From Rebecca billardiae RCC1528 (lineage: Eukaryota; Protista; Haptophyta), in the NCBI GenBank assembly GCA_965240325.2, contig OZ251230.1, positions 1,550,001 through 1,614,000 on the forward strand: 64,000 nt of DNA. Direction: 5' to 3'. The notes under the pieces are model-generated. The model worked only from the letters and a program-made list of their open reading frames with translations. It was not told the DNA's origin and did no database searches. Positions 16,674 to 48,842 of the stretch are shown here, one piece after another (positions within the stretch are counted from its first letter, which is position 1; each line of letters begins with the position of its first letter). The position numbers were made by a program, and so were the translations under genes.

Positions 16674-16776
<103 letters not shown>

Positions 16777-18104: not shown

Positions 18105-18188
18105 GACGGCTGCAAGCCTCGCCGTGGCACGGCGCCCGGCCCGGACTTGCAACAAGCAACCGGGTGCCGGACAGTACGTACGAAGCCG

Positions 18189-19414: not shown

Positions 19415-19446
<32 letters not shown>

Positions 19447-26399: not shown

Positions 26400-27928
26400 C
26401 TACCGGTCCATTCTACGCATCATCCGCCGGCCGCCGATTGAGCCTACATACACATCAATCTGCCACATGGACGCCGCGCTGAGCACGCCCAGCTCGGCGT
26501 CCCCGCCCGCGCGAGCAGAGACGGTGCCCAGGCCGCCGAGCGCCGGGCGCTCGCCGATGTCGACGGCCTCGACGGTCTCGTCCTGCTCGGCCGCCATGAC
26601 GCGCGGCAGCGGGATCACCACGCGCTGCGCCGCCAGCGCGATGAGCGCGTTCGCCTCCGCCTGCGCCTGCGAGAGCCGGTCGGTGAGGCGGCGCGTCGAT
26701 TTGCGCATGTTGATGCGTGCGCGGTGCATTCTTGGCCTGCGCGATCGAGCGCGTGCTCCCCGCCGCGGCCCACGAGCGGTGGAACGCTTCGTGCGAGCGC
26801 GAGACGCGCTCGGCGGTGCCCTCGCTCGAGCCCCTGCGGTCCTCCTCCTCCGCCGAGCCCTCGCCGCCCGGCGCGGGGATCAGCCCCAAACGCGGCCGAG
26901 CGTCGTCGGCAGCGCGGCGGTGCGCTGGGGCGTGCGCGCGGGCGTGCGCGCGGGCGGCAGAGCGGGCGCCGACTTGGGCGTGCCGCGCGCGGCGGGGCGG
27001 CGCGGCGGCGGCGAGGCGCCGACGGTGAGCGGCCGACCGTCCGGCCGCAAGCCGTCGTCGTACAGCACGCGCAGCCTGCTAAACGGCGTGCCGTGGTACG
27101 AGATCGTCGAGAAGGCCTGCAACGCCATCTCCTTAGCGCGCGCGCGCTCGGCCTCGAGCGCTACGCGCCGCTCGGCGCGGCAGGTGCGCGCCGCTTCGCC
27201 CACGCACGCCGCCACCCGTCCGCGGGCTGCGGCGCCGGCCGCTTGCGCGGGGCGCGGGCGCCCGACTGCACGCTCCGCAGCACCGCCGCGCGCGCGTGCT
27301 CGTCGGGGAGCAGCTTGTCCAGCTCGGTCGCCAGCGCGCGCACGTCCACCCAGACCGCGCGCAGCATGCGCTCGACGGCTGCGAACGCGCGCGTCGGCTC
27401 GAGGCGCTCGATCGTCTTGTACGCGCCGAGGGTGACGTTGAGCCCACCGCAGTGCTCAAACTGCCGCACGCAGTGCCGGTTGCGCACGCGCCCTCGCCCG
27501 AGCGCTGCCGCCGCCTCGTCGAAGCTGGGGCGCGACATGCCGAATGCCTCCGAGCAATGGCGCGCGCCGTCCATGTCACGGCCCGCGGTGCACTTGGACG
27601 CGTACGCCGAGGCGAAGCGCTCGAGCGGCTCTCTGTAGAAGACAGCGGCGTGCCACGTCGGGTCGGCCAGCCGCGCCGCGGCGTCCTCCACGCCCAGCCC
27701 GAAGTAGCGCAGCGTGTTGGTGTTCTACACGAACAGCTGCTTGCGCAGCGCCGGGTCGTGCGGCGTGCGGACCGCGCGGAAGAGCTGCACGAAGTTCTGG
27801 CTCGCGACCTTGTCGATCTTGCAGAAGAGGAGCCGTTGCTCCGGCACGAGGATGAAGGAGCTGTACGAAACGAACGGTTTCGTCAGCGTGACCGCCACCC
27901 GGTCGCGTTGCTCCTCGCGCCCGCCATC
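26400..27928 (-). pseudogene. Carbohydrate sulfotransferase (Sulfotransfer_2)-like pseudogene, 5'-truncated; host locus of the array
   Basis: 5'-PAPS motif LLFCKIDKVAS and 3'-PAPS motif FYREPLERFASAY. In-frame TAG at 27725-27727 where other copies have CAG. Coding-like sequence continues left of 27127 (KEMALQAFSTISYHGTPFSRL) with frameshifts. Confidence 0.75.
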
Positions 27929-28121
27929 ATTGTGCGGCCGCCATACAATTCCGCTCCGAAAGCTGATGAGTGTTCACCACTGGCGGGCGGCGGCTGACGA
28001 AACCTTGGTGACCGTGGTGCGGGCCGAGCGGACGCACGTGTGCGGCAGTGTGGCAAGCCCTCTGCAGCTCGTCAGCACGCGCGCCCTTCCGGGTGACGCT
28101 GCCGGGCGACGCGCGCGCCAC

Positions 28122-29318
28122 ATGGTCGACGTGAAGCACCCCAAGTGTGATCACACCGGCTGCACCAAGGTGGCTTCGTTCGGCATGCCGGGCGACGCGC
28201 GCGCCAGCCGGTGCGCTGCGCACAAGCTGGACGGCATGGTGGACGTGACGCACCGCAAGTGTGGTCACGCGGGCTGCACCAAGCTGCCTTCGTTCGGCAT
28301 GCCGGGCGACGCGCGCGCCATCCGGTGCGCCACGCACAAGCTGGCCGGCATGGTCGACCTGAAGCACCCCAAGTGTGATCACACCGGCTGCACCAAGCAG
28401 CCTCACTTCGGCATGCCGGGTGACGCGCGCGCCAGCCGGTGCGCTACGCACAAGCTGGCCGGCATGGTCGACCTGAAGCACCCCAAGTGTGATCACACCG
28501 GCTGCACCAAGGTGGCTTCGTTCGGCATGCCGGGCGACGCGCGCGCCAGCCGGTGCGCTACGCACAAGCTGGCCGGCATGGTGGACGTGAGGAGCCCCAC
28601 GTGTGATCACACAGGCTGCACCACGCGGCCTTGCTTCGGCATGCCGGGTGACGCGCGCGCCAGCCGGTGCGCCACGCACAAGCTGGCCGGCATGGTCGAC
28701 CGGAAGCACCCCAAGTGTGATCACACCGGCTGCACCAAGGGGCCTTCGTTCGGCATGCCGGGTGACGCGCGCGCCAGCCGGTGCGCTACGCACAAGCTGG
28801 CCGGCATGGTGGACGTGAGGAGCCCCAAGTGTGATCACACAGGCTGCACCAAGGTGGCTTCGTTCGGCATGCCGGGCGACGCGCGCGCCAGCCGGTGCGC
28901 CACGCACAAGCTGGCCGGCATGGTGGACGTGAGGTGCCCCAAGTGTGATCACACAGGCTGCACCACGCGGCCTACCTTCGGCATGCCGGGCGACGCGCGC
29001 GCCAGCCGGTGCGCTACGCACAAGCTGGCCGGCATGGTATGCAGTCGGCTCGCCGTCCCCAAGCGTAGGCTGGAGCATGGCACCGGCGACCAGGGCACAC
29101 GCGCAGCCAAGCGACAGCACGAACGCACCAGCCGCATTGCCACCGTCTCGGACTCCGCCCCGCAGCTGCCCGAACTGCCGCCGCTGGTTGGGAGACTGGA
29201 GAGACGAGGCATCGGGGCGGATTGCCGAACGCCGCCACACGACGGTGACACAGATGATGAGTCTGACCATTGGACGGTGACTGATGGCATCCGATCTGTC
29301 CTCCCCTTCCGACGATGA
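28122..29318 (+). CDS. EsV-1-7-type Cys-rich repeat protein, unit 1 (8 repeats)
   Basis: 8 x 114 bp encoding C-x4-C-x16-C-x2-H. Possible upstream in-frame ATG at 27966. Confidence 0.85.
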   Translation: MVDVKHPKCDHTGCTKVASFGMPGDARASRCAAHKLDGMVDVTHRKCGHAGCTKLPSFGMPGDARAIRCATHKLAGMVDLKHPKCDHTGCTKQPHFGMPGDARASRCATHKLAGMVDLKHPKCDHTGCTKVASFGMPGDARASRCATHKLAGMVDVRSPTCDHTGCTTRPCFGMPGDARASRCATHKLAGMVDRKHPKCDHTGCTKGPSFGMPGDARASRCATHKLAGMVDVRSPKCDHTGCTKVASFGMPGDARASRCATHKLAGMVDVRCPKCDHTGCTTRPTFGMPGDARASRCATHKLAGMVCSRLAVPKRRLEHGTGDQGTRAAKRQHERTSRIATVSDSAPQLPELPPLVGRLERRGIGADCRTPPHDGDTDDESDHWTVTDGIRSVLPFRR

Positions 29319-29407
29319 TGATGATTAGTTATTCCATTTATTCCGATTATGCTGATCGCACGTAGCACTATACTAGTTATTACCGAGTAGTACTACGTAT
29401 ATCATGA

Positions 29408-30232
29408 ATCTCCTTGGCGCGCGCGCGCTCGGCCTCGAGCGCGCAACGCGCCGCTCGGCGCGGCGGGCGCGCGCCGCTTCGCCCACGCACGCCGCCACCC
29501 GTCCGCGGGCTGCGGCGCCGGCCGCTTGCGCGGGCGCGGGCGCCCGACTGCACGCTCCGCAGCACCGCCGCGCGCGCGTGCTCGTCGGGGAGCAGCTTGT
29601 CCAGCTCGGGCGCCAGCGCGCGCACGTCCTGTCGTCCACCCCGACCGCGCGCAGCATGCGCTCGACGGCTGCGAACGCGCGCGTCGGCTCGAGGCGCTCG
29701 ATCGTCTTGTACGCGCCGAGGGTGGCGTTGAGCCCGCCGCAGTGCTCAGACTGCCGCACGCAGTGCCGGTTGTGCACGCGCCCTCGCCCGAGCGCTGCCG
29801 CCGCCTCGTCGAAGCTGGGGCGCGACATGCCGAATGCCTCCGAGCAATGGCGCGCGCCGTCCATGTCACGGCCCGCGGTGCACAGTGCACTTGGACGCGT
29901 ACGCCGAGGCGAAGCGCTCGAGCGGCTCTCTGTAGAAGACAGCGGCGTGCCACGTCGGGTCGGCCAGCCGCGCCGCGGCGTCCTCCACGCCCAGCCCGAA
30001 GTAGCGCAGCGTGTTGGTGTTCTGCACGAACAGCTGCTTGCGCAGCGCCGGGTCGTGCGGCGTGCGGACCGCGCGGAAGCGCGGAAGAGCTGCACGAAGT
30101 TCTGGCTCGCGACCTTGTCGATCTTGCAGAAGAGGAGCCGGTGCTCCGGCACGAGGATGAAGGAGCTGTACGAAACGAACGGTTTTGTCAGCGTGACCGC
30201 CACCCGGTCGCGTTGCTCCTCGCGCCCGCCAT
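29408..30232 (-). pseudogene. Sulfotransferase fragment, unit 2
   Basis: Same PAPS motifs, broken by short duplications near 29880 and 30075. Confidence 0.75.
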
Positions 30233-30426: not shown

Positions 30427-31515
30427 ATGGTCGACGTGAAGCACCCCAAGTGTGAATACGAGGGCTGCACCATGCGGCCTTCCTTCGGCATACCGGGCGA
30501 CGCGCGCGCTAGACGGTGCGCTACGCACAAGCTGGCCGGCATGGTCAACGCGAGGAGCCCCAAGTGTGGTCACGCGGGCTGCACCACGCAGCCTACCTTC
30601 GGCATGCCGGGCGACGCGCGCGCCAGCCGGTGCGCTACGCACAAGCTGGCCGGCATGGTCGACGCGAAGCACCCCAAGTGTGATCACACAGGCTGCACCA
30701 AGGTGGCTTCGTTCGGCATGCCGGGCGACGCGCGCGCCAGCCGGTGCGCTACGCACAAGCTGGCCGGCATGGTGGACGTGAGGAGCCCCACGTGTGATCA
30801 CACCGGCTGCACCACGCGGCCTGCCTTCGGCATGCCGGGCGACGCGCGCGCCAGCCGGTGCGCTACGCACAAGCTGGCCGGCATGGTGGACGTGAGGAGC
30901 CCCAAGTGTGATCACACTGGCTGCACCAAGGTGCCTTACTTCGGCATGCCGGGAGACGCGCGCGCCAGCCGGTGCGCTAAGCACAAGCTGGCCGGCATGG
31001 TCGACCTGAAGAACCCCAAGTGTGATCACACCGGCTGCACCACGCGGCCTTCGTTCGGCATGCCGGGCGACGCGCGCGCCAGCCGGTGCGCTACGCACAA
31101 GCTGGCCGGCATGGTCGACGTGAAGCACCCCAAGTGTGATCACACTGGCTGCACCAAGCAGCCTAACTTCGGCATGCCGGGTGACGCGCGCGCCAGCCGG
31201 TGCGCTACGCACAAGCTGGCCGGCATGGTATGCAGTCGGCTCGCCGTCCCCAAGCGTAGGCTGGAGCATGGCACCGGCGACCAGGGCACACGCGCAGCCA
31301 AGCGACAGCACGAACGCACCAGCCGCATTGCCACCGTCTCGGACTCCGCCCCGCAGCTGCCCGAACTGCCGCCGCTGGTTGGGAGACTGGAGAGACGAGG
31401 CATCGGGGTGGATTGCCGAACGCCGCCACACGACGGTGACACAGATGATGAGTCTGACCATTGGACGGTGATGGCATCCGATCTGTCCTCCCCTTCCGAC
31501 GATGATGATGATTAA
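30427..31515 (+). CDS. EsV-1-7-type Cys-rich repeat protein, unit 2 (7 repeats)
   Basis: 7 x 114 bp; tail ends SDDDDD. Confidence 0.85.
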   Translation: MVDVKHPKCEYEGCTMRPSFGIPGDARARRCATHKLAGMVNARSPKCGHAGCTTQPTFGMPGDARASRCATHKLAGMVDAKHPKCDHTGCTKVASFGMPGDARASRCATHKLAGMVDVRSPTCDHTGCTTRPAFGMPGDARASRCATHKLAGMVDVRSPKCDHTGCTKVPYFGMPGDARASRCAKHKLAGMVDLKNPKCDHTGCTTRPSFGMPGDARASRCATHKLAGMVDVKHPKCDHTGCTKQPNFGMPGDARASRCATHKLAGMVCSRLAVPKRRLEHGTGDQGTRAAKRQHERTSRIATVSDSAPQLPELPPLVGRLERRGIGVDCRTPPHDGDTDDESDHWTVMASDLSSPSDDDDD

Positions 31516-31594
31516 TTATTCCATTTATTCCGATTATGCTGATCGCACGTAGCACTATACTAGTTATTACCGAGTAGTACTACGTATATCATGA

Positions 31595-32409
31595 ATCTCC
31601 TTGGCGCGCGCGCGCTCGGCCTCGAGCGCGCAACGCGCCGCTCGGCGCGGCAGACCTGTGCGCGCCGCTTCGCCCACGCACGCCGCCACCCGTCCGCGGG
31701 CTGCGGCGCCGGCCGCTTGCGCGGGGCGCGGGCGCCCGACTGCACGCTCCGCAGCACCGCCGCGCGCGCGTGCTCGTCGGGGAGCAGCTTGTCCAGCTCG
31801 GGCGCCAGCGCGCGCACGTCCTGTCGTCCACCCCCACCGCGCGCAGCATGCGCTCGACGGCTGCGAACGCGCGCGTCGGCTCGAGGCGCTCGATCGTCTT
31901 GTACGCGCCGAGGGTGATGTTGAGCCCGCCGCAGTGCTCAGACTGCCGCACGCAGTGCCGGTTGCGCACGCGCCCTCGCCCGAGCGCTGCCGCCGCCTCG
32001 TCGAAGCTGGGGCGCGACATTCCGAATGCCTCCGAGCAATGGCGCGCGCCGTCCATGTCACGGCCCGCGGTGCACTTGGACGCGTACGCCGAGGCGAAGC
32101 GCTCGAGCGGCTCTCTGTAGAAGACAGCGGCGTGCCACGTCGGGTCGGCCAGCCGCGCCGCGGCGTCCTCCACGCCCAGCCCGAAGTAGCGCAGCGTGTT
32201 GGTGTTCTGCACGAACAGCTGCTTGCGCAGCGCCGGGTCGTGCGGCGTGCGGACCGCGCGGAAGAGCTGCACGAAGTTCTGGCTCGCGACCTTGTCGATC
32301 TTGCAGAAGAGGAGCTGGTGCTCCGGCACGAGGATGAAGGAGCTGTACGAAACGAACGGTTTTGTCAGCGTGACCGCCACCCGGTCGCGTTGCTCCTCGC
32401 GCCCGCCAT
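31595..32409 (-). pseudogene. Sulfotransferase fragment, unit 3
   Basis: CKIDKVAS and YREPLERFASAY in one frame; frameshift after AVGVDD. Confidence 0.75.
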
Positions 32410-32600
32410 CATTGTGCGGCCGCCATACAATTCCGCTCCGAAAGCTGATGAGTGTTGACCACTGGCGGGCGGCTGACGAAACCTTGGTGACCGTGGTGCG
32501 GGCCGAGCGGACGCACGTGTGCGGCAGTCTGGCAAGCCCTCTGCAGCTCGTCACCACGCGCGCCCTTCCGGGTGACGCGGCCGGGCGACGCGCGCGCCTC

Positions 32601-34028
32601 ATGGTCGACGTGAAGCACCCCAAGTGTGAATACGAGGGCTGCACCATGCGGCCTTCCTTCGGCATACCGGGCGACGCGCGCGCTAGACGGTGCGCTACGC
32701 ACAAGCTGGCCGGCATGGTCAACGCGAGGAGCCCCAAGTGTGGTCACGCGGGCTGCACCACGCAGCCTACCTTCGGCATGCCGGGCGACGCGCGCGCCAG
32801 CCGGTGCGCTACGCACAAGCTGGCCGGCATGGTCGACGCGAAGCACCCCAAGTGTGATCACACCGGCTGCACCACGCGGCCTTCCTTCGGCATACCGGGC
32901 GACGCGCGCGCCAGCCGGTGCGCTACGCACAAGCTGGCCGGCATGGTGGACGTGAGGAGCCCCAAGTGTGATCACACCGGCTGCACCAAGCTGCCTCACT
33001 TCGGCATGCCGGGAGACCCGCGCGCCAGCCGGTGCACTACGCACAAGGTGGCCGGCATGGTCGATGTGAAGAACCCCAAGTGTGAACACGCCAGCTGCAC
33101 CACGCAGCCTACCTTCGGCATGCCGGGCGACGCGCGCGCCAGCCGGTGCGCTACGCACAAGCTGGCCGGCATGGTCGACGCGAAGCACCCCAAGTGTGAT
33201 CACACCGGCTGCACCACGCGGCCTGCCTTCGGCATGCCAATCGACGCGCGCGCCAGCCGGTGCGCTACGCACAAGCTGGCCGGCATGGTGGACGTGAGGA
33301 GCCCCAAGTGTGATCACACCGGCTGCACCAAGGTGGCTTCGCTCGGCATGCTGGGCGACGCTCGCGCCAGCCGGTGCGCTACGCACAAGCTGGCCGGCAT
33401 GGTCGACGTGAAGCACCCCAAGTGTGATCACACTGGCTGCACCAAGGTGGCTTCGTTCGGCATGCCGGGCGACGCGCGCGCCAGCCGGTGCGCTACGCAC
33501 AAGCTGGCCGGCATGGTGGACGTGAGGAGCCCCAAGTGTGATCACACAGGCTGCACCACGCGGCCTTGCTTCGGCATGCCGGGTGACGCGCGCGCCAGCC
33601 GGTGCGCCACGCACAAGCTGACCGGCATGGTCGACGTGAAGCACCCCAAGTGTGATCACACTGGCTGCACCAAGCGGCCTAACTTTGGCATGCCGGGTGA
33701 CGCGCGCGCCAGCCGGTGCGCTACGCACAAGCTGGCTGGCATGGTATCATGTAGTCGGCTCGCCGTCCCCAAGCGCAGGCTGGAGCATGGCACCGGCGAC
33801 CAGGGCACACGCGCAGCCAAACGACAGCACAAACGCACCAGCCGCATTACCACCGTCTCGGACTCCGCCCCGCAGCTGCCCGAACTGCCGCCGCTGGTTG
33901 GGAGACTGGAGAGACGAGGCATCGGGGCGGATTGCCGAACGCCGCCACACGGCGGTGACACAGATGATGAGTCTGACCATTGGACGGTGACTGATGGCAT
34001 CCGATCTGTCCTCCCCTTCCGACGATGA
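32601..34028 (+). CDS. EsV-1-7-type Cys-rich repeat protein, unit 3 (10 repeats)
   Basis: 10 x 114 bp; tail ends VLPFRR. Confidence 0.85.
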   Translation: MVDVKHPKCEYEGCTMRPSFGIPGDARARRCATHKLAGMVNARSPKCGHAGCTTQPTFGMPGDARASRCATHKLAGMVDAKHPKCDHTGCTTRPSFGIPGDARASRCATHKLAGMVDVRSPKCDHTGCTKLPHFGMPGDPRASRCTTHKVAGMVDVKNPKCEHASCTTQPTFGMPGDARASRCATHKLAGMVDAKHPKCDHTGCTTRPAFGMPIDARASRCATHKLAGMVDVRSPKCDHTGCTKVASLGMLGDARASRCATHKLAGMVDVKHPKCDHTGCTKVASFGMPGDARASRCATHKLAGMVDVRSPKCDHTGCTTRPCFGMPGDARASRCATHKLTGMVDVKHPKCDHTGCTKRPNFGMPGDARASRCATHKLAGMVSCSRLAVPKRRLEHGTGDQGTRAAKRQHKRTSRITTVSDSAPQLPELPPLVGRLERRGIGADCRTPPHGGDTDDESDHWTVTDGIRSVLPFRR

Positions 34029-34117
34029 TGATGATTAGTTATTCCATTTATTCCGATTATGCTGATCGCACGTAGCACTATACTAGTTATTACCGAGTAG
34101 AACTACGTATATCATGA

Positions 34118-34929
34118 ATCTCCTTGGCGCGCGCGCGCTCGGCCTCGAGCGCGCAACGCGCGCCGCTCGGTGCGGCGGGCGCGCGCCGCTTCGCCCACGC
34201 ACGCCGCCACCCGTCCGCGGGCTGCGGCGCCGGCCGCTTGCGCGGGGCGCGGGCGCCCGACTGCACGCTCCGCAGCACCGCCGCGCGCGCGTGCTCGTCG
34301 GGGAGCAGCTTGTCCAGCTCGGGCGCCAGCGCGCGCACGTCCTGTCGTCCACCCCGACCGCGCGCAGCATGCGCTCGACGGCTGCGAACGCGCGCGTCGG
34401 CTCGAGGCGCTCGATCGTCTTGTACGCGCCGAGGGTGGCGTTGAGCCCGCCGCAGTGCTCAGACTGCCGCACGCAGTGCCGGTTGTGACGCGCCCTCGCC
34501 CGAGCGCTGCCGACGCCTCGTCGAAGCTGGGGCGCGACATGCCGAATGCCTCTGAGCAATGGCGCGCGCCGTCCATGTCACGGCCCGCGGTGCACTTGGA
34601 CGCGTACGCCGAGGCGAAGCGCTCGAGCGGCTCTCTGTAGAAGACAGCGGCGTGCCACGTCGGGTCGGCCAGCCGCGCCGCGCCGTCCTCCACGCCCAGC
34701 CCGAAGTAGCGCAGCGTGTTGGTGTTCTGCACGAACAGCTGCTTGCGCAGCGCTGGGTCGTGCGGCGTGCGGACCGTGCGGAAGAGCTGCACGAAGTTCT
34801 GGCTCACGACCTTGTCGATCTTGCAGAAGAGGAGCTGGTGCTCCGGCACGAGGATGAAGGAGCTGTACGAAACGAACGCGGCGCTCATCGCGACCGCCAC
34901 CCGGTCGCGTTGCTCCTCGCGCCCGCCAT
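34118..34929 (-). pseudogene. Sulfotransferase fragment, unit 4
   Basis: PAPS motifs present; 1-bp deletion near 34487. Confidence 0.75.
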
Positions 34930-35153
34930 TGTGCGGCCGCCATACAATTCCGCTCCGAAAGCTGATGACCACTGGCGAGCGGGCGGCGGCTGACGAAACC
35001 TTGTTGCTGCAACTTGGAGTGCGCTGGCGTGGATCCGGTGTCCGAGGCGCGGGCCGAGCGGACGCAACGTGTGGCGGCAGTGTGGCAAGCCCTCTGCAGC
35101 TCGTCACCACGCGCGCCCTTCCGGGTGACGCTGCCGGGCGACGCGCGCGCCAC

Positions 35154-36242: not shown

Positions 36243-36319
36243 TTATTCCATTTATTCCGATTATGCTGATCGCACGTAGCACTACTAGTTATTACCGAGT
36301 AGTACTACGTATATCATGA

Positions 36320-37129: not shown

Positions 37130-37353
37130 TGTGCGGCCGCCATACAATTCCGCTCCGAAAGCTGATGACCACTGGCGAGCGGGCGGCGGCTGACGAAACC
37201 TTGTTGCTGCAACTTGGAGTGCGCGGGCGTGGATCCGGTGACCGAGGCGCGGGCCGAGCGGACGCAACGTGTGGCGGCAGTGTGGCAAGCCCTCTGCAGC
37301 TCGTCACCACGCGCGCCCTTCCGGGTGACGCTGCCGGGCGACGCGCGCGCCAC

Positions 37354-38670: not shown

Positions 38671-38749
38671 TTATTCCATTTATTCCGATTATGCTGATCG
38701 CACGTAGCACTATACTAGTTATTACCGAGTAGAACTACGTATATCATGA

Positions 38750-39561: not shown

Positions 39562-39784
39562 TGTGCGGCCGCCATACAATTCCGCTCCGAAAGCTGATGA
39601 CCACTGGCGAGCGGGCGGCGGCTGACGAAACCTTGTTGCTGCAACTTGGAGTGCGCTGGCGTGGATCCGGTGACCGAGGCGCGGGCCGAGCGGACGCACG
39701 TGTGGCGGCAGTGTGGCAAGCCCTCTGCAGCTCGTCACCACGCGCGCCCTTCCGGGTGACGCTGCCGGGCGACGCGCGCGCCAC

Positions 39785-40873
39785 ATGGTCGACGTGAAGC
39801 ACCCCAAGTGTGATCACACCGGCTGCACCAAGGTGGCTTCGTTCGGCATGCTGGGCGACGCGCGCGCCAGCCGGTGCGCTACGCACAAGCTGGCCGGCAT
39901 GGTCGACGTGAGGAGCCCCAAGTGTGATCACACCGGCTGCACCACGCGGCCTACCTTCGGCATGCCGGGTGACGCGCGCGCCAGCCGGTGCGCTACGCAC
40001 AAGCTGACCGGCATGGTCGACTTGAAGCACCCCAAGTGTGATCACACTGGCTGCACCAAGCAGCCTAACTTCGGCATGCCAGGAGACGCGTGCGCCAGCC
40101 GGTGCGCTGCGCACAAGCTGGCCGGCATGGTCGACGTGAAGAACCCCAAGTGTGATCACACCGGCTGCACCAAGTGGCCTTCATTCGGCATGCCGGGCGA
40201 GCGGCGCGCCAGCCGGTGCGCTGCGCACAAGCTGGCCGGCATGGTCGACGTGAAGCACCCCAAGTGTGATCACACAGGCTGCACCAAGGTGGCTTCGTTC
40301 GGCATGCCGGGCGACGCGCGCGCAAGCCGGTGCGCTACGCACAAGCTGGCCGGCATGGTGGACGTGACGAGCCCCAAGTGTGATCACACAGGCTGCATCA
40401 CGCGGCCTACCTTCGGCATGCCGGGCGACGCGCGCGCCAGCCGGTGCGCTGCGCACAAGCTGACCGGCATGGTCGACGTGAAGAACCCCAAGTGCGATCA
40501 CACCGGCTGCACCAAGGGGCCTTCGTTCGGCATGCCGGGCGACGCGCGCGCCAGCCGGTGCGCTACGCACAAGCTGGCCGGCATGGTACGCAGTCGGCTC
40601 GCCGTCCCCAAGCGTAGGCTGGAGCATGGCACCGGCGACCAGGGCACACGCGCAGCCAAGCGACAGCACGAACGCACCAGCCGCATTGCCACCGTCTCGG
40701 ACTCCGCCCTGCAGCTGCCCGAACTGCCGCCGCTGGTTGGGAGACTGGAGAGACGAGGCATCGGGGCGGATTGCCGTACGCCGCCACACGACGGTGACAC
40801 AGATGATGAGTCTGACCATTGGACGGTGATGGCATCCGATCTGTCCTCCCGTTCCGACGATGATGATGATTAA
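39785..40873 (+). CDS. EsV-1-7-type Cys-rich repeat protein, unit 6 (7 repeats; same as unit 4)
   Basis: 7 x 114 bp in the same repeat order as unit 4. Confidence 0.85.
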   Translation: MVDVKHPKCDHTGCTKVASFGMLGDARASRCATHKLAGMVDVRSPKCDHTGCTTRPTFGMPGDARASRCATHKLTGMVDLKHPKCDHTGCTKQPNFGMPGDACASRCAAHKLAGMVDVKNPKCDHTGCTKWPSFGMPGERRASRCAAHKLAGMVDVKHPKCDHTGCTKVASFGMPGDARASRCATHKLAGMVDVTSPKCDHTGCITRPTFGMPGDARASRCAAHKLTGMVDVKNPKCDHTGCTKGPSFGMPGDARASRCATHKLAGMVRSRLAVPKRRLEHGTGDQGTRAAKRQHERTSRIATVSDSALQLPELPPLVGRLERRGIGADCRTPPHDGDTDDESDHWTVMASDLSSRSDDDDD

Positions 40874-40950
40874 TTATTCCATTTATTCCGATTATGCTGA
40901 TCGCACGTAGCACTACTAGTTATTACCGAGTAGTACTACGTATATCATGA

Positions 40951-41760
40951 ATCTCCTTGGCGCGCGCGCGCTCGGCCTCGAGCGCGCAACGCGCCGCTCG
41001 GCGCGGCGGGCGCGCGCCGCTTCGCCCACGCACGCCGCCACCCGTCCGCGGGCTGCGGCGCCGGCCGCTTGCGCGGGGCGCGGGCGCCCGACTGCACGCT
41101 CCGCAGCACCGCCGCGCGCGCGTGCTCGTCGGGGAGCAGCTTGTCCAGCTCGGGCGCCAGCGCGCGCACGTCCTGTCGTCCACCCCGACCGCGCGCAGCA
41201 TGCGCTCGACGGCTGCGAACGCGCGCGTCGGCTCGAGGCGCTCGATCGTCTTGTACGCGCCGAGGGTGGCGTTGAGCCCGCCGCAGTGCTCAGACTGCCG
41301 CACGCAGTGCCGGTTGTGACGCGCCCTCGCCCGAGCGCTGCCGACGCCTCGTCGAAGCTGGGGCGCAACATGCCAAATGCCTCTGAGCAATGGCGCGCGC
41401 CGTCCATGTCACGGCCCGCGGTGCACTTGGACGCGTACGCCGAGGCGAAGCGCGCGAGCGGCTCTCTGTAGAAGACAGCGGCGTGCCACGTCGGGTCGGC
41501 CAGCCGCGCCGCGCCGTCCTCCACGCCCAGCCCGAAGTAGCGCAGCGTGTTGGTGTTCTGCACGAACAGCTGCTTGCGCAGCGCTGGGTCGTGCGGCGTG
41601 CGGACCGTGCGGAAGAGCTGCACGAAGTTCTGGCTCACGACCTTGTCGATCTTGCAGAAGAGGAGCTGGTGCTCCGGCACGAGGATGAAGGAGCTGTACG
41701 AAACGAACGCGGCGCTCATCGCGACCGCCACCCGGTCGCGTTGCTCCTCGCGCCCGCCAT
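40951..41760 (-). pseudogene. Sulfotransferase fragment, unit 7
   Basis: Essentially identical to the unit 5 fragment. Confidence 0.75.
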
Positions 41761-41984
41761 TGTGCGGCCGCCATACAATTCCGCTCCGAAAGCTGATGAC
41801 CACTGGCGAGCGGGCGGCGGCTGACGAAACCTTGTTGCTGCAACTTGGAGTGCGCGGGCGTGGATCCGGTGACCGAGGCGCGGGCCGAGCGGACGCAACG
41901 TGTGGCGGCAGTGTGGCAAGCCCTCTGCAGCTCGTCACCACGCGCGCCCTTCCGGGTGACGCTGCCGGGCGACGCGCGCGCCAC

Positions 41985-43301
41985 ATGGTCGACGTGAAGC
42001 ACCCCAAGTGTGATCACACCGGCTGCACCAAGGTGGCTTCGTTCGGCATGCTGGGCGACGCGCGCGCCAGCCGGTGCGCTACGCACAAGGTGGCCGGCAT
42101 GGTCGACCTGAAGCACCCCAAGTGTGATCACACCGGCTGCACCAAGGTGCCTTCCTTCGGCATGCCGGGCGACGCGCGCGCCATCCGGTGCGCTACGCAC
42201 AAGCTGGCCGGCATGGTCGACCTGAAGAACCCCAAGTGTGATCACACCGGCTGCACCACGCGGCCTACCTTCGGCATGCCGGGTGACGCGCGCGCCAGCC
42301 GGTGCGCTACGCACAAGCTGCCCGGCATGGTCGACTTGAAGCACCCCAAGTGTGATCACACTGGCTGCACCAAGCAGCCTAACTTCGGCATGCCAGGAGA
42401 CGCGTGCGCCAGCCGGTGCGCTACGCACAAGCTGGCCGGCATGGTCGACGTGAAGAACCCCAAGTGTGATCACACCGGCTGCACCAAGTGGCCTTCATTC
42501 GGCATGCCGGGCGAGCGGCGCGCCAGCCGGTGCGCTGCGCACAAGCTGGCCGGCATGGTCGACGTGAAGCACCCCAAGTGTGATCACACAGGCTGCACCA
42601 AGGTGGCTTCGTTCGGCATGCCGGGCGACGCGCGCGCAAGCCGGTGCGCTACGCACAAGCTGGCCGGCATGGTGGACGTGACGAGCCCCAAGTGTGATCA
42701 CACAGGCTGCATCACGCGGCCTACCTTCGGCATGCCGGGCGACGCGCGCGCCAGCCGGTGCGCTGCGCACAAGCTGACCGGCATGGTCGACCTGAAGCAC
42801 CCCAAGTGTGATCACACCGGCTGCACCACGCGGCCTTCCTTCGGCATGCCGGGCGACGCGCGCGCCATCCGGTGCGCTACGCACAAGCTGGCCGGCATGG
42901 TGGACGTGAGGAGCCCCAAGTGTGATAACACTGGCTGCACCAAGCAGCCTAACTTCGGCATGCCGGGCGACGCGCGCGCCAGCCGGTGCGCTACGCACAA
43001 GCTGGCCGGCATGGTATGCAGTCGGCTCGCCGTCCCCAAGCGTAGGCTGGAGCATGGCACAGGCGACCAGGGCACACGCGCAGCCAAGCGACAGCACGAA
43101 CGCACCAGCCGCATTGCCACCGTCTCGGACTCCGCCCCGCAGCTGCCCGAACTGCCGCCGCTGGTTGGGAGACTGGAGAGACGAGGCATCGGGGCGGATT
43201 GCCGAACGCCGCCACACGGCGGTGACACAGATGATGAGTCTGACCATTGGACGGTGATGGCATCCGATCTGTCCTCCCCTTCCGACGACGATGATGATTA
43301 A
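41985..43301 (+). CDS. EsV-1-7-type Cys-rich repeat protein, unit 7 (9 repeats; same repeats as unit 5)
   Basis: 9 x 114 bp; tail of the unit-8 type. Confidence 0.85.
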   Translation: MVDVKHPKCDHTGCTKVASFGMLGDARASRCATHKVAGMVDLKHPKCDHTGCTKVPSFGMPGDARAIRCATHKLAGMVDLKNPKCDHTGCTTRPTFGMPGDARASRCATHKLPGMVDLKHPKCDHTGCTKQPNFGMPGDACASRCATHKLAGMVDVKNPKCDHTGCTKWPSFGMPGERRASRCAAHKLAGMVDVKHPKCDHTGCTKVASFGMPGDARASRCATHKLAGMVDVTSPKCDHTGCITRPTFGMPGDARASRCAAHKLTGMVDLKHPKCDHTGCTTRPSFGMPGDARAIRCATHKLAGMVDVRSPKCDNTGCTKQPNFGMPGDARASRCATHKLAGMVCSRLAVPKRRLEHGTGDQGTRAAKRQHERTSRIATVSDSAPQLPELPPLVGRLERRGIGADCRTPPHGGDTDDESDHWTVMASDLSSPSDDDDD

Positions 43302-43378
43302 TTATTCCATTTATTCCGATTATGCTGATCGCACGTAGCACTACTAGTTATTACCGTGTAGTACTACGTATATCATGA

Positions 43379-44185
43379 ATCTCCTTGGCGCGCGCGCGCT
43401 CGGCCTCGAGCGCTACGCGCCTCTCGGCGCGGCGGGCGCGCGCCGTTTCGCCCACGCACGCCGCCACCCGTCCGCGGGCTGCGGCGCCGGCCGCTTGCGC
43501 GGGGCGCGGGCGCCCGACTGCACGCTCCGCAGCACCGCCGCGCGCGCGTGCTCGTCGGGGAGCAGCTTGTCCAGCTCGGGCGCCAGCGCGCGCACGTCCT
43601 GTCGTCCACCCCGACCGCGCGCAGCATGCGCTCGACGGCTGCGAACGCGCGCGTCGGCTCGAGGCGCTCGATCGTCTTGTACGCGCCGAGGGTGGCGTTG
43701 AGCCCGCCGCAGTGCTCAGACTGCCGCACGCAGTGCCGGTTGTGCACGCGCCCTCGCCCGAGCGCTGCCGCCGCCTCGTCGAAGCTGGGGCGCGACATGC
43801 CGAATGCCTCCGAGCAATGGCGCGCGCCGTCCATGTCACGGCCCGCGGTGCACTTGGACGCGTACGCCGAGGCGAAGCGCTCGAGCGGCTCTCTGTAGAA
43901 GACAGCGGCGTGCCACGTCGGGTCGGCCAGCCGCGCCGCGGCGTCCTCCACGCCCAGCCCGAAGTAGCGCAGCGTGTTGGTGTTCTGCACGAACAGCTGC
44001 TTGCGCAGCGCTGGGTCGTGCGGCGTGCGGACCGCGCGGAAGAGCTGCACGAAGTTCCGGCTCACGACCTTGTCGATCTTGCAGAAGAGGAGCTGGTGCT
44101 CCGGCACGAGGATGAAGGAGCTGTACGAAACGAACGCGGCGCTCAGGCGACCGCCACCCGGTCGCGTTGCTCCTCGCGCCCGCCA
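43379..44185 (-). pseudogene. Sulfotransferase fragment, unit 8
   Basis: PAPS motifs present; frameshift after AVGVDD. Confidence 0.75.
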
Positions 44186-44410
44186 TTGTGCGGCCGCCAT
44201 ACAATTCCGCTCCGAAAGCTGATGACCACTGGCGAGCGGGCGGCGGCTGACGAAACCTTGTTGCTGCAACTTGGAGTGCGCGGGCGTGGATCCGGTGACC
44301 GAGGCGCGGGCCGAGCGGACGCAACGTGTGGCGGCAGTGTGGCAAGCCCTCTGCAGCTCGTCACCACGCGCGCCCTTCCGGGTGACGCTGCCGGGCGACG
44401 CGCGCGCCAC

Positions 44411-45955
44411 ATGGTCGACGTGAAGCACCCCAAGTGTGATCACACCGGCTGCACCAAGGTGGCTTCGTTCGGCATGCCGGGCGACGCGCGCGCCAGCCGG
44501 TGCGCTGCGCACAAGCTGGCCGGCATGGTGGACGTGAGGAGCCCCAAGTGTGATCACACAGGCTGCACCACGCGGCCTACCTTCGGCATGCCGGGCGACG
44601 CGCGCGCCAGCCGGTGCGCTGCGCACAAGCTGGCCGGCATGGTCGACCTGAAGAACCCCAAGTGTGATCACACCAGCTGCGCCACGCGGCCTACCTTCGG
44701 CATGCCGGGCGACGCGCGCGCAAGCCGGTGCGCTACGCACAAGCTGCCCGGCATGGTCGACTTGAAGCACCCCAAGTGTGATCACACTGGCTGCACCAAG
44801 CAGCCTAACTTCGGCATGCCGGGCGACGCGCGCGCAAGCCGGTGCGCTACGCACAAGCTGGCCGGCATGGTCGACCTGAAGCACCCCAAGTGTGATCACA
44901 CCGGCTGCACCAAGGTGGCTTCGCTCGGCATGCTGGGCGACGCTCGCGCCAGCCGGTGCGCTACGCACAAGCTGGCCGGCATGGTCGACCTGAAGCACCC
45001 CAAGTGTGATCACACCGGCTGCACCAAGCTGCCTTCGTTCGGCATGCCGGGCGACGCGCGCGCCAGCCGGTGCGCTACGCACAAGCTGGCCGGCATGGTC
45101 GACGTGAAGAACCCCAAGTGCGATCACACCGGCTGCACCAAGGGGCCTTCGTTCGGCATGCCGGGTGACGCGCGCGCCAGCCGGTGCGCTACGCACAAGC
45201 TGGGAGGCATGGTGGACGTGAGGAGCCCCAAGTGTGATCACACAGGCTGCACCAAGCAGCCTAACTTCGGCATGCCGGGCGACGCGCGCGCCAGCCGGTG
45301 CGCTACGCACAAGCTGGCCGGCATGGTGGACGTGAGGAGCCCCACGTGTGATCACACAGGCTGCACCACGCGGCCTTGCTTCGGCATGCCGGGCGACGCG
45401 CGCGCCAGCCGGTGCGCCACGCACAAGCTGGCCGGCATGGTGGACGTGAGGAGCCCCAAGTGTGATCACACTGGCTGCACCAAGCAGCCTAACTTCGGCA
45501 TGCCGGGCGACGCGCGCGCCAGCCGGTGCGCTACGCACAAGCTGGCCGGCATGGTGGACGTGAGGAGCCCGAAGTGTGATAACACTGGCTGCACCAAGCA
45601 GCCTAACTTCGGCATGCCGGGCGACGCGCGCGCCAGCCGGTGCGCTACGCACAAGCTGGCCGGCATGGTATGCAGTCGGCTCGCCGTCCCCAAGCGTAGG
45701 CTGGAGCATGGCACCGGCGACCAGGGCACACGCGCAGCCAAGCGACAGCACGAACGCACCAGCCGCATTGCCACCGTCTCGGACTCCGCCCCGCAGCTGC
45801 CCGAACTGCCGCGGCTGGTTGGGAGACTGGAGAGACGAGGCATCGGGGCGGATTGCCGAACGCCGCCACACGGCGGTGACACAGATGATGAGTCTGACCA
45901 TTGGACGGTGATGGCATCCGATCTGTCCTCCCCTTCCGACGACGATGATGATTAG
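44411..45955 (+). CDS. EsV-1-7-type Cys-rich repeat protein, unit 8 (11 repeats)
   Basis: 11 x 114 bp. Confidence 0.85.
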   Translation: MVDVKHPKCDHTGCTKVASFGMPGDARASRCAAHKLAGMVDVRSPKCDHTGCTTRPTFGMPGDARASRCAAHKLAGMVDLKNPKCDHTSCATRPTFGMPGDARASRCATHKLPGMVDLKHPKCDHTGCTKQPNFGMPGDARASRCATHKLAGMVDLKHPKCDHTGCTKVASLGMLGDARASRCATHKLAGMVDLKHPKCDHTGCTKLPSFGMPGDARASRCATHKLAGMVDVKNPKCDHTGCTKGPSFGMPGDARASRCATHKLGGMVDVRSPKCDHTGCTKQPNFGMPGDARASRCATHKLAGMVDVRSPTCDHTGCTTRPCFGMPGDARASRCATHKLAGMVDVRSPKCDHTGCTKQPNFGMPGDARASRCATHKLAGMVDVRSPKCDNTGCTKQPNFGMPGDARASRCATHKLAGMVCSRLAVPKRRLEHGTGDQGTRAAKRQHERTSRIATVSDSAPQLPELPRLVGRLERRGIGADCRTPPHGGDTDDESDHWTVMASDLSSPSDDDDD

Positions 45956-46032
45956 TTATTCCATTTATTCCGATTATGCTGATCGCACGTAGCACTACTA
46001 GTTATTACCGAGTAGTACTACGTATATCATGA

Positions 46033-46843
46033 ATCTCCTTGGCGCGCGCGCGCTCGGCCTGGAGCGCTTCGCGCCTCTCGGCGCGGCGGGCGCGCGCCGC
46101 TTCGCCCACGCACGCCGCCACCCGTCCGCGGGCTGCGGCGCCGGCCGCTTGCGCGGGGCGCGGGCGCCCGACTGCACGCCCCGCAGCACCGCCGCGCGCG
46201 CGTGCTCGTCGGGGAGCAGCTTGTCCAGCTCGGGCGCCAGCGCGCGCACGTCCTGTCGTCCACCCCGACCGCGCGCAGCATGCGCTCGACGGCTGCGAAC
46301 GCGCGCGTCGGCTCGAGGCGCTCGATCGTCTTGTACGCGCCGAGGGTGGCGTTGAGCCCGCCGCAGTGCTCAGACTGCCGCACGCAGTGCCGATTGTGCA
46401 CGCGCCCTCGCCCGAGCGCTGCCGCCGCCTCGTCGAAGCTGGGGCGCGACATGCCGAATGCCTCCGAGCAATGGCGCACGCCGTCCATGTCACGGCCCGC
46501 GGTGCACTTGGACACGGACGCCGAGGCGAAGCGCTCGAGCGGCTCTCTGTAGAAGACAGCGGCGTGCCACGTCGGGTCGGCCAGCCGCGCCGCGGCGTCC
46601 TCCACGCCCAGCCCGAAGTAGCGCAGCGTGTTGGTGTTCTGCACGAACAGCTGCTTGCGCAGCGCCGGGTCGTGCGGCGTGCGGACCGCGCGGAAGAGCT
46701 GCACGAAGTTCTGGCTCGCGACCTTGTCGTCGATCTTGCAGAAGAGGAGCCGTTGCTCCGGCACGAGGATGAAGGAGCTGTACGAAACGAACGCGGCGCT
46801 CAGGCGACCGCCACCCGGTCGCGTTGCTCCTCGCGCCCGCCAT
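46033..46843 (-). pseudogene. Sulfotransferase fragment, unit 9
   Basis: Both PAPS motifs altered (CKIDDKVAS; ERFASASV). Confidence 0.75.
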
Positions 46844-47066
46844 TGTGCGGCCGCCATACAATTCCGCTCCGAAAGCTGATGACCACTGGCGAGCGGGCGG
46901 CGGCTGACGAAACCTTGTTGCTGCAACTTGGAGTGCGCGGGCGTGGATCCGGTGACCGAGGCGCGGGCCGAGCGGACGCACGTGTGGCGGCAGTGTGGCA
47001 AGCCCTCTGCAGCTCGTCACCACGCGCGCCCTTCCGGGTGACGCTGCCGGGCGACGCGCGCGCCAC

Positions 47067-48788
47067 ATGGTCGACGTGAAGCACCCCAAGTGTGATTACG
47101 AGGGCTGCACCACGCGGCCTACCTTCGGCATGCTGGGCGATGCGCGCGCCAGCCGGTGCGCTGCGCACAAGCTGGCCGGCATGGTCGACGTGAAGAACCC
47201 CAAGTGTGATCACACAGGCTGCACCAAGGTGCCTTCGTTCGGCATGCCGGGCGACACGCGCGCCAGCCGGTGCGCTACGCACAAGCTGGCCGGCATGGTG
47301 GACGTGAGGAGCCCCAAGTGTGATCACACCAGCTGCACCACGCGGCCTTCATTCGGCATGCTGGGCGACGCGCGCGCCAGCCGGTGCGCTGCGCACAAGC
47401 TGGCCGGCATGGTCGACCTGAAGCACCCCAAGTGTGATCACACCGGCTGCACCACGCGGCCTACCTTCGGCATGCCGGGCGACGCGCGCGCAAGCCGGTG
47501 CGCTACGCACAAGCTGGCCGGCATGGTCGACCTGAAGCACCCCAAGTGTGGTCACACCGGCTGCACCAAGGTGGCTTCGCTCGGCATGCTGGGCGACGCT
47601 CGCGCCAGCCGGTGCGCTACGCACAAGCTGGCCGGCATGGTCGACCTGAAGCACCCCAAGTGTGATCACACCGGCTGCACCAAGCTGCCTTCGTTCGGCA
47701 TGCCGGGCGACGCGCGCGCCAGCCGGTGCGCTACGCACAAGCTGGCCGGCATGGTCGACCTGAAGAACCCCAAGTGTGATCACACCAGCTGCGCCACGCG
47801 GCCTACCTTCGGCATGCCGGGCGACGCGCGCGCCAGCCGGTGCGCTACGCACAAGCTGGCCGGCATGGTCGACCTGAAGCACCCCAAGTGTGATCACACC
47901 GGCTGCACCAAGGTGCCTTACTTCGGCATGCCGGGCGACGCGCGCGCCAGCCGGTGCACTACGCACAAGCTGGCCGGCATGGTGGACGTGAAGCACCACA
48001 AGTGTGATCACACTAGCTGCACCAAGCAGCCTAACTTTGGCATGCCGGGTGACGCGCGCGCCAGCCGGTGCGCCACGCACAAGCTGGCCGGCATGGTGGA
48101 CGTGAGGAGCCCCAAGTGTGATCACACTGGCTGCACCAAGCAGCCTCACTTCGGCATGCCGGGTGACGCGCGCGCCAGCCGGTGCGCTACGCACAAGCTG
48201 GCCGGCATGGTCGATGTGAGGAGCCCCAAGTGTGATCACACTGGCTGCACCAAGCAGCCTAACTTTGGCATGCCGGGTGACGCGCGCGCCAGCCGGTGCG
48301 CCACGCACAAGCTGGCCGGCATGGTGGACGTGAGGAGCCCCAAGTGTGATCACACTGGCTGCACCAAGCGGCCTAACTTTGGCATGCCGGGTGACGCGCG
48401 CGCCAGCCGGTGCGCTACGCACAAGCTGGCCGGCATGGTATCATGTAGTCGACTCGCCGTCCCCAAGCGCAGGCTGGAGCATGGCACCGGCGACCAGGGC
48501 ACACGCGCAGCCAAGCGACTACAGCACGAACGCACCAGCCGCATTGCCACCGTCTCGGACTCCGCCCCGCAGCTGCCCGAACTGCCGCCGCTGGTTGGGA
48601 GACTCGAGAGACGAGGCATCGGGGCGGATGGCCGAACGCCGCCACGACACGACGGTGACACAGATGATGAGTCTGACCATTGGACGGTGATGGCATCCGA
48701 TCTGTCCTCCCAGCAGGCTGCTTCCGTGAGTTCCGACGATGATGATGATCTGATTCATTACGATGATTATGCTGATGATCGCACGTAG
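47067..48788 (+). CDS. EsV-1-7-type Cys-rich repeat protein, unit 9 (12 repeats)
   Basis: 12 x 114 bp; longer acidic tail SDDDDDLIHYDDYADDRT. Confidence 0.85.
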   Translation: MVDVKHPKCDYEGCTTRPTFGMLGDARASRCAAHKLAGMVDVKNPKCDHTGCTKVPSFGMPGDTRASRCATHKLAGMVDVRSPKCDHTSCTTRPSFGMLGDARASRCAAHKLAGMVDLKHPKCDHTGCTTRPTFGMPGDARASRCATHKLAGMVDLKHPKCGHTGCTKVASLGMLGDARASRCATHKLAGMVDLKHPKCDHTGCTKLPSFGMPGDARASRCATHKLAGMVDLKNPKCDHTSCATRPTFGMPGDARASRCATHKLAGMVDLKHPKCDHTGCTKVPYFGMPGDARASRCTTHKLAGMVDVKHHKCDHTSCTKQPNFGMPGDARASRCATHKLAGMVDVRSPKCDHTGCTKQPHFGMPGDARASRCATHKLAGMVDVRSPKCDHTGCTKQPNFGMPGDARASRCATHKLAGMVDVRSPKCDHTGCTKRPNFGMPGDARASRCATHKLAGMVSCSRLAVPKRRLEHGTGDQGTRAAKRLQHERTSRIATVSDSAPQLPELPPLVGRLERRGIGADGRTPPRHDGDTDDESDHWTVMASDLSSQQAASVSSDDDDDLIHYDDYADDRT

Positions 48789-48842
48789 CAGTATACGTGC
48801 ATGTCATCGCAAGACGATGCTGACGCGATGATGACGATATAT

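Follow-up and report, generated by a model that had tools for sequence, protein, structure and literature searches.

The EsV-1-7 domain defines the largest orthogroup of brown algae and the developmental regulator IMM, and is widespread in giant viruses, the family being regarded as virus-associated; tandem clustering of its genes has been reported in brown algae, and according to a 2026 preprint the Ectocarpus members carry no other Pfam domain. The hallmarks of this family (EsV-1 ORF 7, Ectocarpus IMMEDIATE UPRIGHT), namely the 38-residue C-x4-C-x16-C-x2-H repeat and the habit of tandem clustering, are shared by the subject of the present work, nine neighbouring genes at positions 27127-48790 of a 64,000-nucleotide stretch (hereafter, the window) of contig OZ251230.1 of the haptophyte Rebecca billardiae RCC1528. 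As the same repeats are found in viral relatives attached to DNA-cutting enzymes, they probably represent a modular DNA-recognition device. Neither the family nor its clustered gene arrangement is new; the signature of selection and the link to nucleases described below appear to be unreported, as no description of positive selection at defined repeat positions or of nuclease fusions was found in the literature considered, which did not include the founding 2017 paper.

The locus arose by recent tandem amplification of a cassette of two genes in a GC-rich nuclear genome. Nine copies of 2.2-2.7 kb each are present, in which an intact, apparently intronless EsV-1-7 gene with 7-12 repeats lies on the plus strand and a sulfotransferase pseudogene on the minus strand; the 3' ends of the two genes of the cassette converge on an AT-rich stretch of ~80 bp, and the 5' ends lie ~260 bp apart. 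Tandem Repeats Finder resolved nine arrays of period 114 between 28121 and 48439 (8.1, 7.1, 10.1, 7.1, 9.1, 7.1, 9.1, 11.1 and 12.1 copies in units 1-9; 88-92% matches, zero indels), and in-frame translation gave 80 repeats of 38 amino acids with zero stops and zero frameshifts. The nine units with 8, 7, 10, 7, 9, 7, 9, 11 and 12 repeats, which had been claimed in an initial annotation of this DNA, were thereby reproduced, as were, exactly, the consensus and the word strings quoted there for units 1 and 9. Its coordinates, 27127-48790, proved accurate as well, since blastn placed the left edge of the repeated block at 27127 and the right one at ~48711, and the stop codon of unit 9 is at 48788. 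Outside the arrays units 2-9 are mutually 97-100% identical, including the ~1.4 kb between arrays, which holds the tail of the upstream gene and the minus-strand Sulfotransfer_2 pseudogene; no further copies of the unit were found within the window outside the cluster. The count of 80 repeats stands; as an independent sample it shrinks to 64 (58 distinct DNA and 53 distinct protein sequences), since units 6-7 duplicate units 4-5 at 99.8% identity (8 mismatches and 1 gap over 4632 bp) and have the same arrays. This duplicated block of 4.6 kb (34029-38670 versus 38671-43301) is either the latest duplication step or a spot of the assembly for a long-read check.

The assignment of the repeats to the EsV-1-7 family, proposed initially from the cysteine pattern, was confirmed by a profile search: the Pfam model PF19114 (EsV_1_7_cys; curated threshold 25 bits) matches with 360-535 bits (E 4e-110 to 7e-165), one matched stretch falling on each repeat (8, 11 and 12 in the three proteins scanned). 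In all 80 repeats C9, C14, C31 and H34 of the C-x4-C-x16-C-x2-H pattern are invariant, the period is exactly 114 bp, and the junction between repeats, H-K-L-x-G-M-V-D, is conserved. The repeats are EsV-1-7 modules predicted to bind zinc, with C9, C14, C31 and H34 as the ligands.

Variation on this scaffold is concentrated in two blocks. Per-site entropy peaks at residues 16-19 (1.08, 2.17, 0.75 and 2.06 bits, respectively) and at residues 4-6 (1.25, 1.17 and 1.55 bits), not exceeding 0.84 bits at every other position of the repeat. The initial annotation had placed the variation in the five residues after the second cysteine; its positions 3 and 5 correspond to residues 17 and 19, with the residue sets it listed, but the second block at residues 4-6 had been missed. 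By Nei-Gojobori estimates for all pairs of distinct repeats, the ratio of nonsynonymous to synonymous substitution rates (dN/dS) is 4.4-4.6 at codons 4-6 and 16-19 versus 0.28-0.32 at the other 31 codons, with synonymous diversity (piS) of ~0.11, which agrees with the proposed near-invariant scaffold bearing a few hypervariable positions. Nucleotide diversity at codon positions 1, 2 and 3 amounts to 0.33, 0.40 and 0.07 in the variable codons versus 0.05, 0.03 and 0.09 in the scaffold, and the six codons observed at residue 17 all end in G. Since third positions are spared, unlike in a local mutational hot spot, selection is indicated, and the data point to positive selection on the variable codons and purifying selection on the scaffold.

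Residues 16-19 form 16 four-residue words (KVAS 13 times, TRPT and KQPN 10 times each, others more rarely), and residues 4-6 form 11 triads, which occur with these words in many combinations, i.e., the two blocks reassort; residues 17 and 19 show strong coupling (0.96 bit of mutual information). Each repeat has its nearest relative in another unit, from which it differs by a median of 2 mismatches per 114 nucleotides (by three or fewer in 47 of the 64), and adjacent repeats differ by 10.9 as compared with 10.8 for random pairs. As neighbours are no more alike than random pairs, the arrays are mosaics of shared repeat types and not internally homogenised satellites, in line with the limited, reshuffled vocabulary noted at the outset. 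Synonymous divergence among repeats (~11%) exceeds the divergence between units (0-3%); therefore the repeat types are older than the gene copies and were redistributed by gain, loss and exchange of whole repeats.

An AlphaFold2 model of the repeats, which is metal-free, has a mean predicted local distance difference test score (pLDDT) of 89.7, and for each of the repeats the DSSP program assigns bridges to residues 2-3, 20-21 and 30 and a single helical turn to residues 32-34. If the C9...C14 knuckle forms the turn, residue 4 would be set opposite residue 19, and residue 6 opposite residue 17, so that the four most variable residues would share one patch on a hairpin. In the BFVD database the repeat model matches EsV-1-7 itself (E 9e-15), as well as proteins of marseille-, pitho-, cedrat-, faunus-, klosneu- and Tetraselmis viruses, several of these matches (the cedratvirus, pithovirus and faunusvirus proteins) being named "Endonuclease".

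The nuclease link was followed among the 120 best database matches, to which all counts of homologues refer. The best of them are only 43-57% identical to the window proteins and mostly metagenomic, the named sources being Coccomyxa, Effrenium, Hanusia and Scytosiphon; no close relatives were found in IMG/VR and the Joint Genome Institute (JGI) metagenomes. A C-terminal extension of ~170-270 amino acids follows the repeats in 105 of the 120 homologues, and a nuclease-like domain is located there in ~100, with the strict motif RPD...E-x-D-E-x-Q-H...R-F-N-P-D in 83 and its variants in a few more. In an alignment of 38 such domains D98, E111, D113, E114 and H117 are invariant, and a four-cysteine ribbon precedes them. 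Searches by sequence (Pfam, and phmmer/profile searches against the PDB) gave no identification of this domain. The best PDB matches of its AlphaFold2 model (pLDDT 85) are almost all PD-(D/E)xK nucleases, with modest scores: the restriction-like endonuclease (RLE) of R2 (E 6e-4, template-modelling score (TM) 0.3), Hjc, R.BspD6I, McrC, Bax1 and PspGI. This uniform list agrees with the motif, and the main C-terminal class of homologues has, judging by the model, a PD-(D/E)xK nuclease fold.

The same matches bear on the possibility that the arrays read single-stranded RNA and act post-transcriptionally, like PUF, PPR and RanBP2-type proteins or CCHC knuckles. Single-stranded nucleic acid is a frequent ligand of small zinc knuckles poor in regular secondary structure, some PD-(D/E)xK domains are RNA endonucleases, and the weak Foldseek matches include the cap-snatching nuclease of a bunyavirus; however, in fold the fused domain matches DNA enzymes most strongly (R2 RLE, Hjc, restriction enzymes, McrC), the carriers of the fusions are DNA viruses, and neither an RNA-binding domain nor a localisation signal is found in the window proteins. 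We consider RNA recognition quite improbable.

The fusions of the repeats to nuclease-type domains seem to be repeated and independent. A second C-terminal class of ~10 homologues (E-F-x-G-N-Y-Y-H-G ... Y-I-W-E) was considered as Vsr-like, an identity which a profile search did not confirm, the resemblance being at the level of the motif only. Four further homologues (P0030, P0073, P0075 and P0087) carry after the repeats the motif E-x-D-G-x-Q-H, reminiscent of DUF559; if this domain is confirmed, the repeat module would be joined to several different nuclease families. In seven Effrenium voratum relatives (P0051, P0062, P0078, P0090, P0100, P0116 and P0120) the ligands are altered, with a first knuckle shortened to C-x-C or C-x2-C and with C-C-x2-C for C-x2-H; the Effrenium voratum relatives keep the FGMPGDAR core and the variable positions, and their C-terminal Vsr-like motif is unconfirmed. 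No nuclease-like domain is present in ~18 of the 120 homologues, and two nuclease-less eukaryotic relatives, P0033 (Coccomyxa elongata) and P0032, have long Gln/Ala- or Pro/Met-rich low-complexity tails, reminiscent of the activation regions of transcription factors. As to the genomic setting, P0001 is encoded on a 329-kb contig with an adjoining capsid gene of nucleocytoplasmic large DNA viruses and VLTF3, and the gene of the closest nuclease-fused relative, P0005 (L001 2090-4777), sits immediately downstream of the gene for the small subunit of ribonucleotide reductase. Ribonucleotide reductase genes are frequent neighbours or targets of homing-type nucleases.

The variable positions of the window recur across the family. 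In 673 repeats drawn from the 120 homologues, residues 17 (0.81), 19 (0.76) and 6 (0.73) show the greatest diversity within proteins; Pro18 is present in 73% of the repeats, Arg occupies position 17 in 28% and Gln in 26%, and the junction is kept (G38 100%, M1 99%). Residues 17 and 19 are the top two variable positions in the Effrenium proteins and in viral P0001, and both are among the four most variable in P0005/13 and P0011; for Coccomyxa and P0006 the first rank goes to residue 17, residue 19 being outside the top eight. Pairs of viral proteins with nuclease domains of 85-100% identity have arrays that are unlike in repeat number and at the variable residues: in P0005 and P0013, whose nuclease domains are identical, there are 7 and 6 repeats, respectively, and the first repeat of the P0102 group reads KHPC, KHPY, KHPN or KQPN. 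The repeat part thus turns over much faster than the catalytic part, the behaviour expected of a specificity module.

The window arrays are uniformly basic, with a net charge of ~+3 per repeat and isoelectric points of 9.3-9.5. On account of the nuclease-type fusions, the rigid junction, this charge and the family-wide residues 17 and 19, sequence-specific binding of nucleic acid by the arrays appears somewhat more probable than not. The repeats could otherwise be protein-binding zinc modules, like LIM, RING, B-box and MYND, whose variable patch tracks fast-evolving partners such as viral proteins, the genes then encoding a family of receptors or adaptors. Protein interfaces between host and pathogen typically show diversifying selection on a surface patch, residue 17 is commonly hydrophobic, and the weak neighbours of the repeat model, none of them significant, include LIM, PHD and other protein-binding zinc domains besides DNA-binding ones. 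This explanation is plausible, though in our opinion unlikely, given that in relatives the repeats are joined to two different kinds of nuclease-type domain at least, and probably to three, that the arrays are basic throughout, and that the invariant junction hints at a regular geometry, as would fit a periodic polymer.

The whole explanation that we favour on balance, at somewhat better than an even chance, is that the window genes are host-resident, nuclease-less, sequence-specific nucleic-acid binders diversifying by repeat shuffling. Each array would bind most likely double-stranded DNA, its specificity being set by residues 17 and 19, which flank Pro18, with a probable contribution from residues 4 and 6 of the facing limb of the zinc-knuckle hairpin; new specificities would arise from gain, loss and exchange of whole repeats by unequal recombination and gene conversion, and from selected substitutions at those residues. 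In giant-virus and algal relatives the repeat module would serve as the N-terminal targeting part of PD-(D/E)xK-type nucleases, of which the window genes would be nuclease-less, host-adapted derivatives, and the combination of basic arrays with mostly acidic tails may make them regulators or blockers rather than cutters. A simple modular code in the repeats, of the kind in which each would read a base or short motif as initially proposed, appears less likely than not. The broadest version, according to which EsV-1-7 repeats are a new class of reprogrammable DNA-recognition modules, each reading a fixed short DNA step via residues 17 and 19 helped by 4 and 6, with viruses aiming PD-(D/E)xK nucleases by them and algae having domesticated them as nuclease-less, rapidly evolving regulators or factors of genome defence, is in our estimation rather doubtful, and a role of the arrays in defence or against transposons is a speculation.

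Several considerations weigh against the favoured explanation. The window contains neither a nuclease domain nor its remnant, as tblastn with the C-terminal regions of eight homologues (including the non-nuclease tail of P0033) matched the repeats only; past the EsV-1-7 stop codon come ~80 bp of AT-rich DNA and then the pseudogene, and not an RPD...E-x-D-E-x-Q-H domain. Since the window proteins have no nuclease domain, the argument from fusions applies to them by association only. The second C-terminal class, one member of which is named Vsr-type endonuclease by JGI, was not confirmed. The repeat model has no significant PDB neighbour (Foldseek, best E 1.7), and a profile search of the PDB gave no sequence match, so that no known fold is assigned; the putative shared face of residues 4, 6, 17 and 19 is deduced solely from the strand register given by the DSSP bridges 2-3/20-21. 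Residue 17 is of a hydrophobic type (Val, Leu, Trp or Gly) in 34 of the 80 repeats. The dN/dS value of the seven variable codons is inflated by their having been picked after the data were seen, and the Nei-Gojobori method is only approximate on recombining paralogous repeats. Finally, nucleic-acid binding by the EsV-1-7 domain is not reported in the literature examined (the founding paper, Macaisne et al., 2017, was not covered), where its function is called unknown.

The locus offers 64 independent repeats on an almost fixed scaffold with clear candidate specificity residues, and this material combined with the nuclease fusions of relatives turns an uncharacterised cysteine-rich motif into a concrete, cheaply testable hypothesis of sequence-specific DNA recognition. 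If true, modular DNA-reading repeats would explain the biochemical role of IMM and of the largest brown-algal orthogroup, and, should a simple residue-to-base relation exist, they would provide a new programmable DNA-binding scaffold linking giant-virus nucleases to host gene regulation.

The EsV-1-7 genes of the cluster encode products of 362-573 amino acids, each composed of the array and a tail of 94-117 residues, and are located as follows.

27127-48790, no strand assigned: whole tandem amplification, nine copies of the cassette, delimited by blastn
28122-29318, plus strand: EsV-1-7 gene of unit 1, 8 repeats (28122-29033), 94-residue tail, acidic C-terminal end replaced owing to a 4-bp insertion
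30427-31515, plus strand: EsV-1-7 gene of unit 2, 7 repeats (30427-31224), 96-residue tail, basic over KRR..KRQ and acidic at its end
32601-34028, plus strand: EsV-1-7 gene of unit 3, 10 repeats (32601-33740), tail with a 4-bp insertion as in unit 1
35154-36242, plus strand: EsV-1-7 gene of unit 4, 7 repeats (35154-35951)
37354-38670, plus strand: EsV-1-7 gene of unit 5, 9 repeats (37354-38379)
39785-40873, plus strand: EsV-1-7 gene of unit 6, 7 repeats (39785-40582), array identical to that of unit 4, in-frame stop just upstream
41985-43301, plus strand: EsV-1-7 gene of unit 7, 9 repeats (41985-43010), array identical to that of unit 5
44411-45955, plus strand: EsV-1-7 gene of unit 8, 11 repeats (44411-45664)
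47067-48788, plus strand: EsV-1-7 gene of unit 9, 12 repeats (47067-48434), longer acidic tail of 117 residues

The first ATG is taken to be that of repeat 1, because in-frame stops occur just upstream in units 6 and 9 and the upstream sequence reads as non-coding. An N-terminal extension from the upstream in-frame sequence was rejected for its non-coding look, its interruption in units 6 and 9 and its antisense position to the pseudogene; long antisense open reading frames (ORFs) through the arrays (e.g., 43373-45901, minus strand) were dismissed as a side effect of the GC-rich repeats. The start codons of the EsV-1-7 genes sit in a CATG palindrome (e.g., 32599-32604), and the minus-strand ATG there leads a long antisense ORF into the sulfotransferase pseudogene, which is probably coincidental. 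Within the tail the KRR...KRQ stretch is basic, and seven of the nine units have an acidic end, that of unit 9 being longer and different; the 4-bp insertion near the end of the coding sequence in units 1 (29270-29318) and 3 (33980-34028) converts the acidic last 14 residues into a basic peptide. No homologue of the tail was detected among 1.84 billion representative proteins, and an exact look-up of one window gene product matched no record.

The second gene of the cassette, divergent in orientation from the first, belongs to the Sulfotransfer_2 family (PF03567), with matches of E 1e-11 in unit 3, 1e-8 in unit 5 and 6.5e-7 in unit 9, all above the threshold of 22 bits. In none of the nine copies does an uninterrupted frame run through the domain, each having a stop or a frameshift.

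27127-27874, minus strand: Sulfotransfer_2 pseudogene of unit 1, in-frame TAG, without the 8-bp insertion of the other eight
29404-30179, minus strand: sulfotransferase pseudogene of unit 2, common 8-bp insertion plus private insertions of 8 and 7 bp
31591-32356, minus strand: sulfotransferase pseudogene of unit 3, best Pfam match (E 1e-11, profile positions 2-183 of 252), followed by the common 8-bp frameshift
34114-34876, minus strand: sulfotransferase pseudogene of unit 4, common 8-bp insertion, 1-bp deletion
36316-37076, minus strand: sulfotransferase pseudogene of unit 5, common 8-bp insertion, 1-bp deletion
38746-39508, minus strand: sulfotransferase pseudogene of unit 6, lesions as in unit 4
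40947-41707, minus strand: sulfotransferase pseudogene of unit 7, lesions as in unit 5
43375-44134, minus strand: sulfotransferase pseudogene of unit 8, common 8-bp insertion, 1-bp deletion near the 5' end
46029-46791, minus strand: sulfotransferase pseudogene of unit 9, common 8-bp insertion, 1-bp deletion near the 5' end

The 1-bp deletion of units 4-7 and that of units 8-9 are separate lesions. As the 8-bp insertion is present in units 2-9 and absent from unit 1, units 2-9 were amplified after the inactivation. The pseudogene in each unit serves as an internal neutral control for the neighbouring EsV-1-7 gene, and it is here that a young neutral segmental amplification, with a variable pattern inherited from an older gene and with no present function or expression, has to be considered. 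The near identity of the units outside the arrays (97-100%), the duplication of the 4.6-kb block at 99.8%, the decay of the partner gene in every unit and the loss of the acidic C-terminal end in two units through the 4-bp insertion would all suit it. Against this, at least six independent disabling lesions have accumulated in the adjacent pseudogenes of ~0.75 kb versus none, neither stop nor frameshift, in 9.1 kb of repeats, the scaffold dN/dS of ~0.3 signifies purifying selection on the protein, and repeat number and order differ between arrays despite the near-identical flanks. Neutrality is hence very unlikely.

The cluster is flanked by genes for a U-box protein, for an ankyrin protein and for a DExH15/ISE2-like helicase of the plastid type. 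The latter is a single ORF of 1760 codons (17331-22613, plus strand) with 76% GC and CGG/GGC-type low-complexity runs at ~20400-21600, and its best named relatives are from Tribonema, Pylaiella, Scytosiphon and a pelagophyte, all of them ochrophyte algae. The GC content at third codon positions (GC3) is 0.81-0.84 in the EsV-1-7 genes versus 0.80-0.88 in the flanking genes; in view of this host-like GC3 and the absence of a compositional break, the genes are resident host genes and not a recent viral insert. The idea of an integrated giant virus, of which the region would be a fragment, draws on the closest database relatives, which are mostly giant-virus contigs or proteins, and on the viral association of the family. 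It is at variance with the equality of GC and GC3 to those of the flanking host genes, with the nature of these flanks (helicase, U-box and ankyrin proteins), and with the low identity to the best homologue and the lack of a related IMG/VR locus; no viral family or hallmark was found among the ten large flanking ORFs, the search being restricted to large ORFs. A viral origin of this kind is extremely improbable. Elsewhere in the window, pure (AT)n microsatellites of 26 copies (1110-1162) and 50 copies (16676-16775) form low-GC islands in sequence of ~70% GC, a 166-bp unit with an AT-rich core occurs twice at 54215-54558 (97% identical), and a perfect 62-bp tandem duplication is located at 61344-61468.

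By analogy, the locus resembles in its behaviour KRAB-ZNF/PRDM9 clusters and TAL effectors, but it has the repeat structure of neither. Like C2H2 arrays of the KRAB-ZNF/PRDM9 kind, it consists of tandem zinc modules with a conserved linker and a few hypervariable, selected positions, in tandem gene clusters with array length changing by unequal recombination; positive selection limited to a few positions of homogenised repeats is common to both, which is a functional analogy only. The window modules are C2CH in 38 residues as compared with C2H2 in 28, their model lacks the beta-beta-alpha finger, and the window proteins gave no Pfam match to zf-C2H2, KRAB or SET, the matches to WT1 fingers being not significant (E > 2). 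With TAL effectors they share near-identical repeats of similar length, a coupled pair of variable residues, a small vocabulary, repeat shuffling, and a basic stretch with an acidic C-terminal end. TAL effector repeats are, however, metal-free two-helix units of 33-35 residues with variable positions 12/13, whereas the window repeats are zinc knuckles with almost no helix and with a second variable block at residues 4-6; no sequence relationship is seen (only PF19114 was found), and a eukaryotic host gene stands against a secreted bacterial effector.

The domain fused to the repeats in homologues is closest in fold to the R2 retrotransposon RLE, which is likewise preceded by a four-cysteine zinc ribbon or knuckle; the likeness concerns the homologues and not the window genes, the matches are weak (E 6e-4, TM 0.3), and the homologues have no reverse transcriptase and use other targeting repeats. 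Within the EsV-1-7 family, the window genes stand apart by repeats ~90% identical within and between genes with variation on seven positively selected codons, and by 7-12 repeats joined to an orphan tail; no IMM-type N-terminal domain was seen in them, and no direct comparison with the IMM N-terminus was made. The nearest counterparts are the giant-virus and algal nuclease fusions (P0001, P0005, and the 'Endonuclease' proteins of cedrat-, pitho- and faunusvirus), which have the same module with the same variable residues 17 and 19 and in which, as in the window, arrays vary in number and words and the rest of the protein is conserved; unlike them, the window proteins are nuclease-less, host-like in composition and arranged in a nine-copy tandem cluster.

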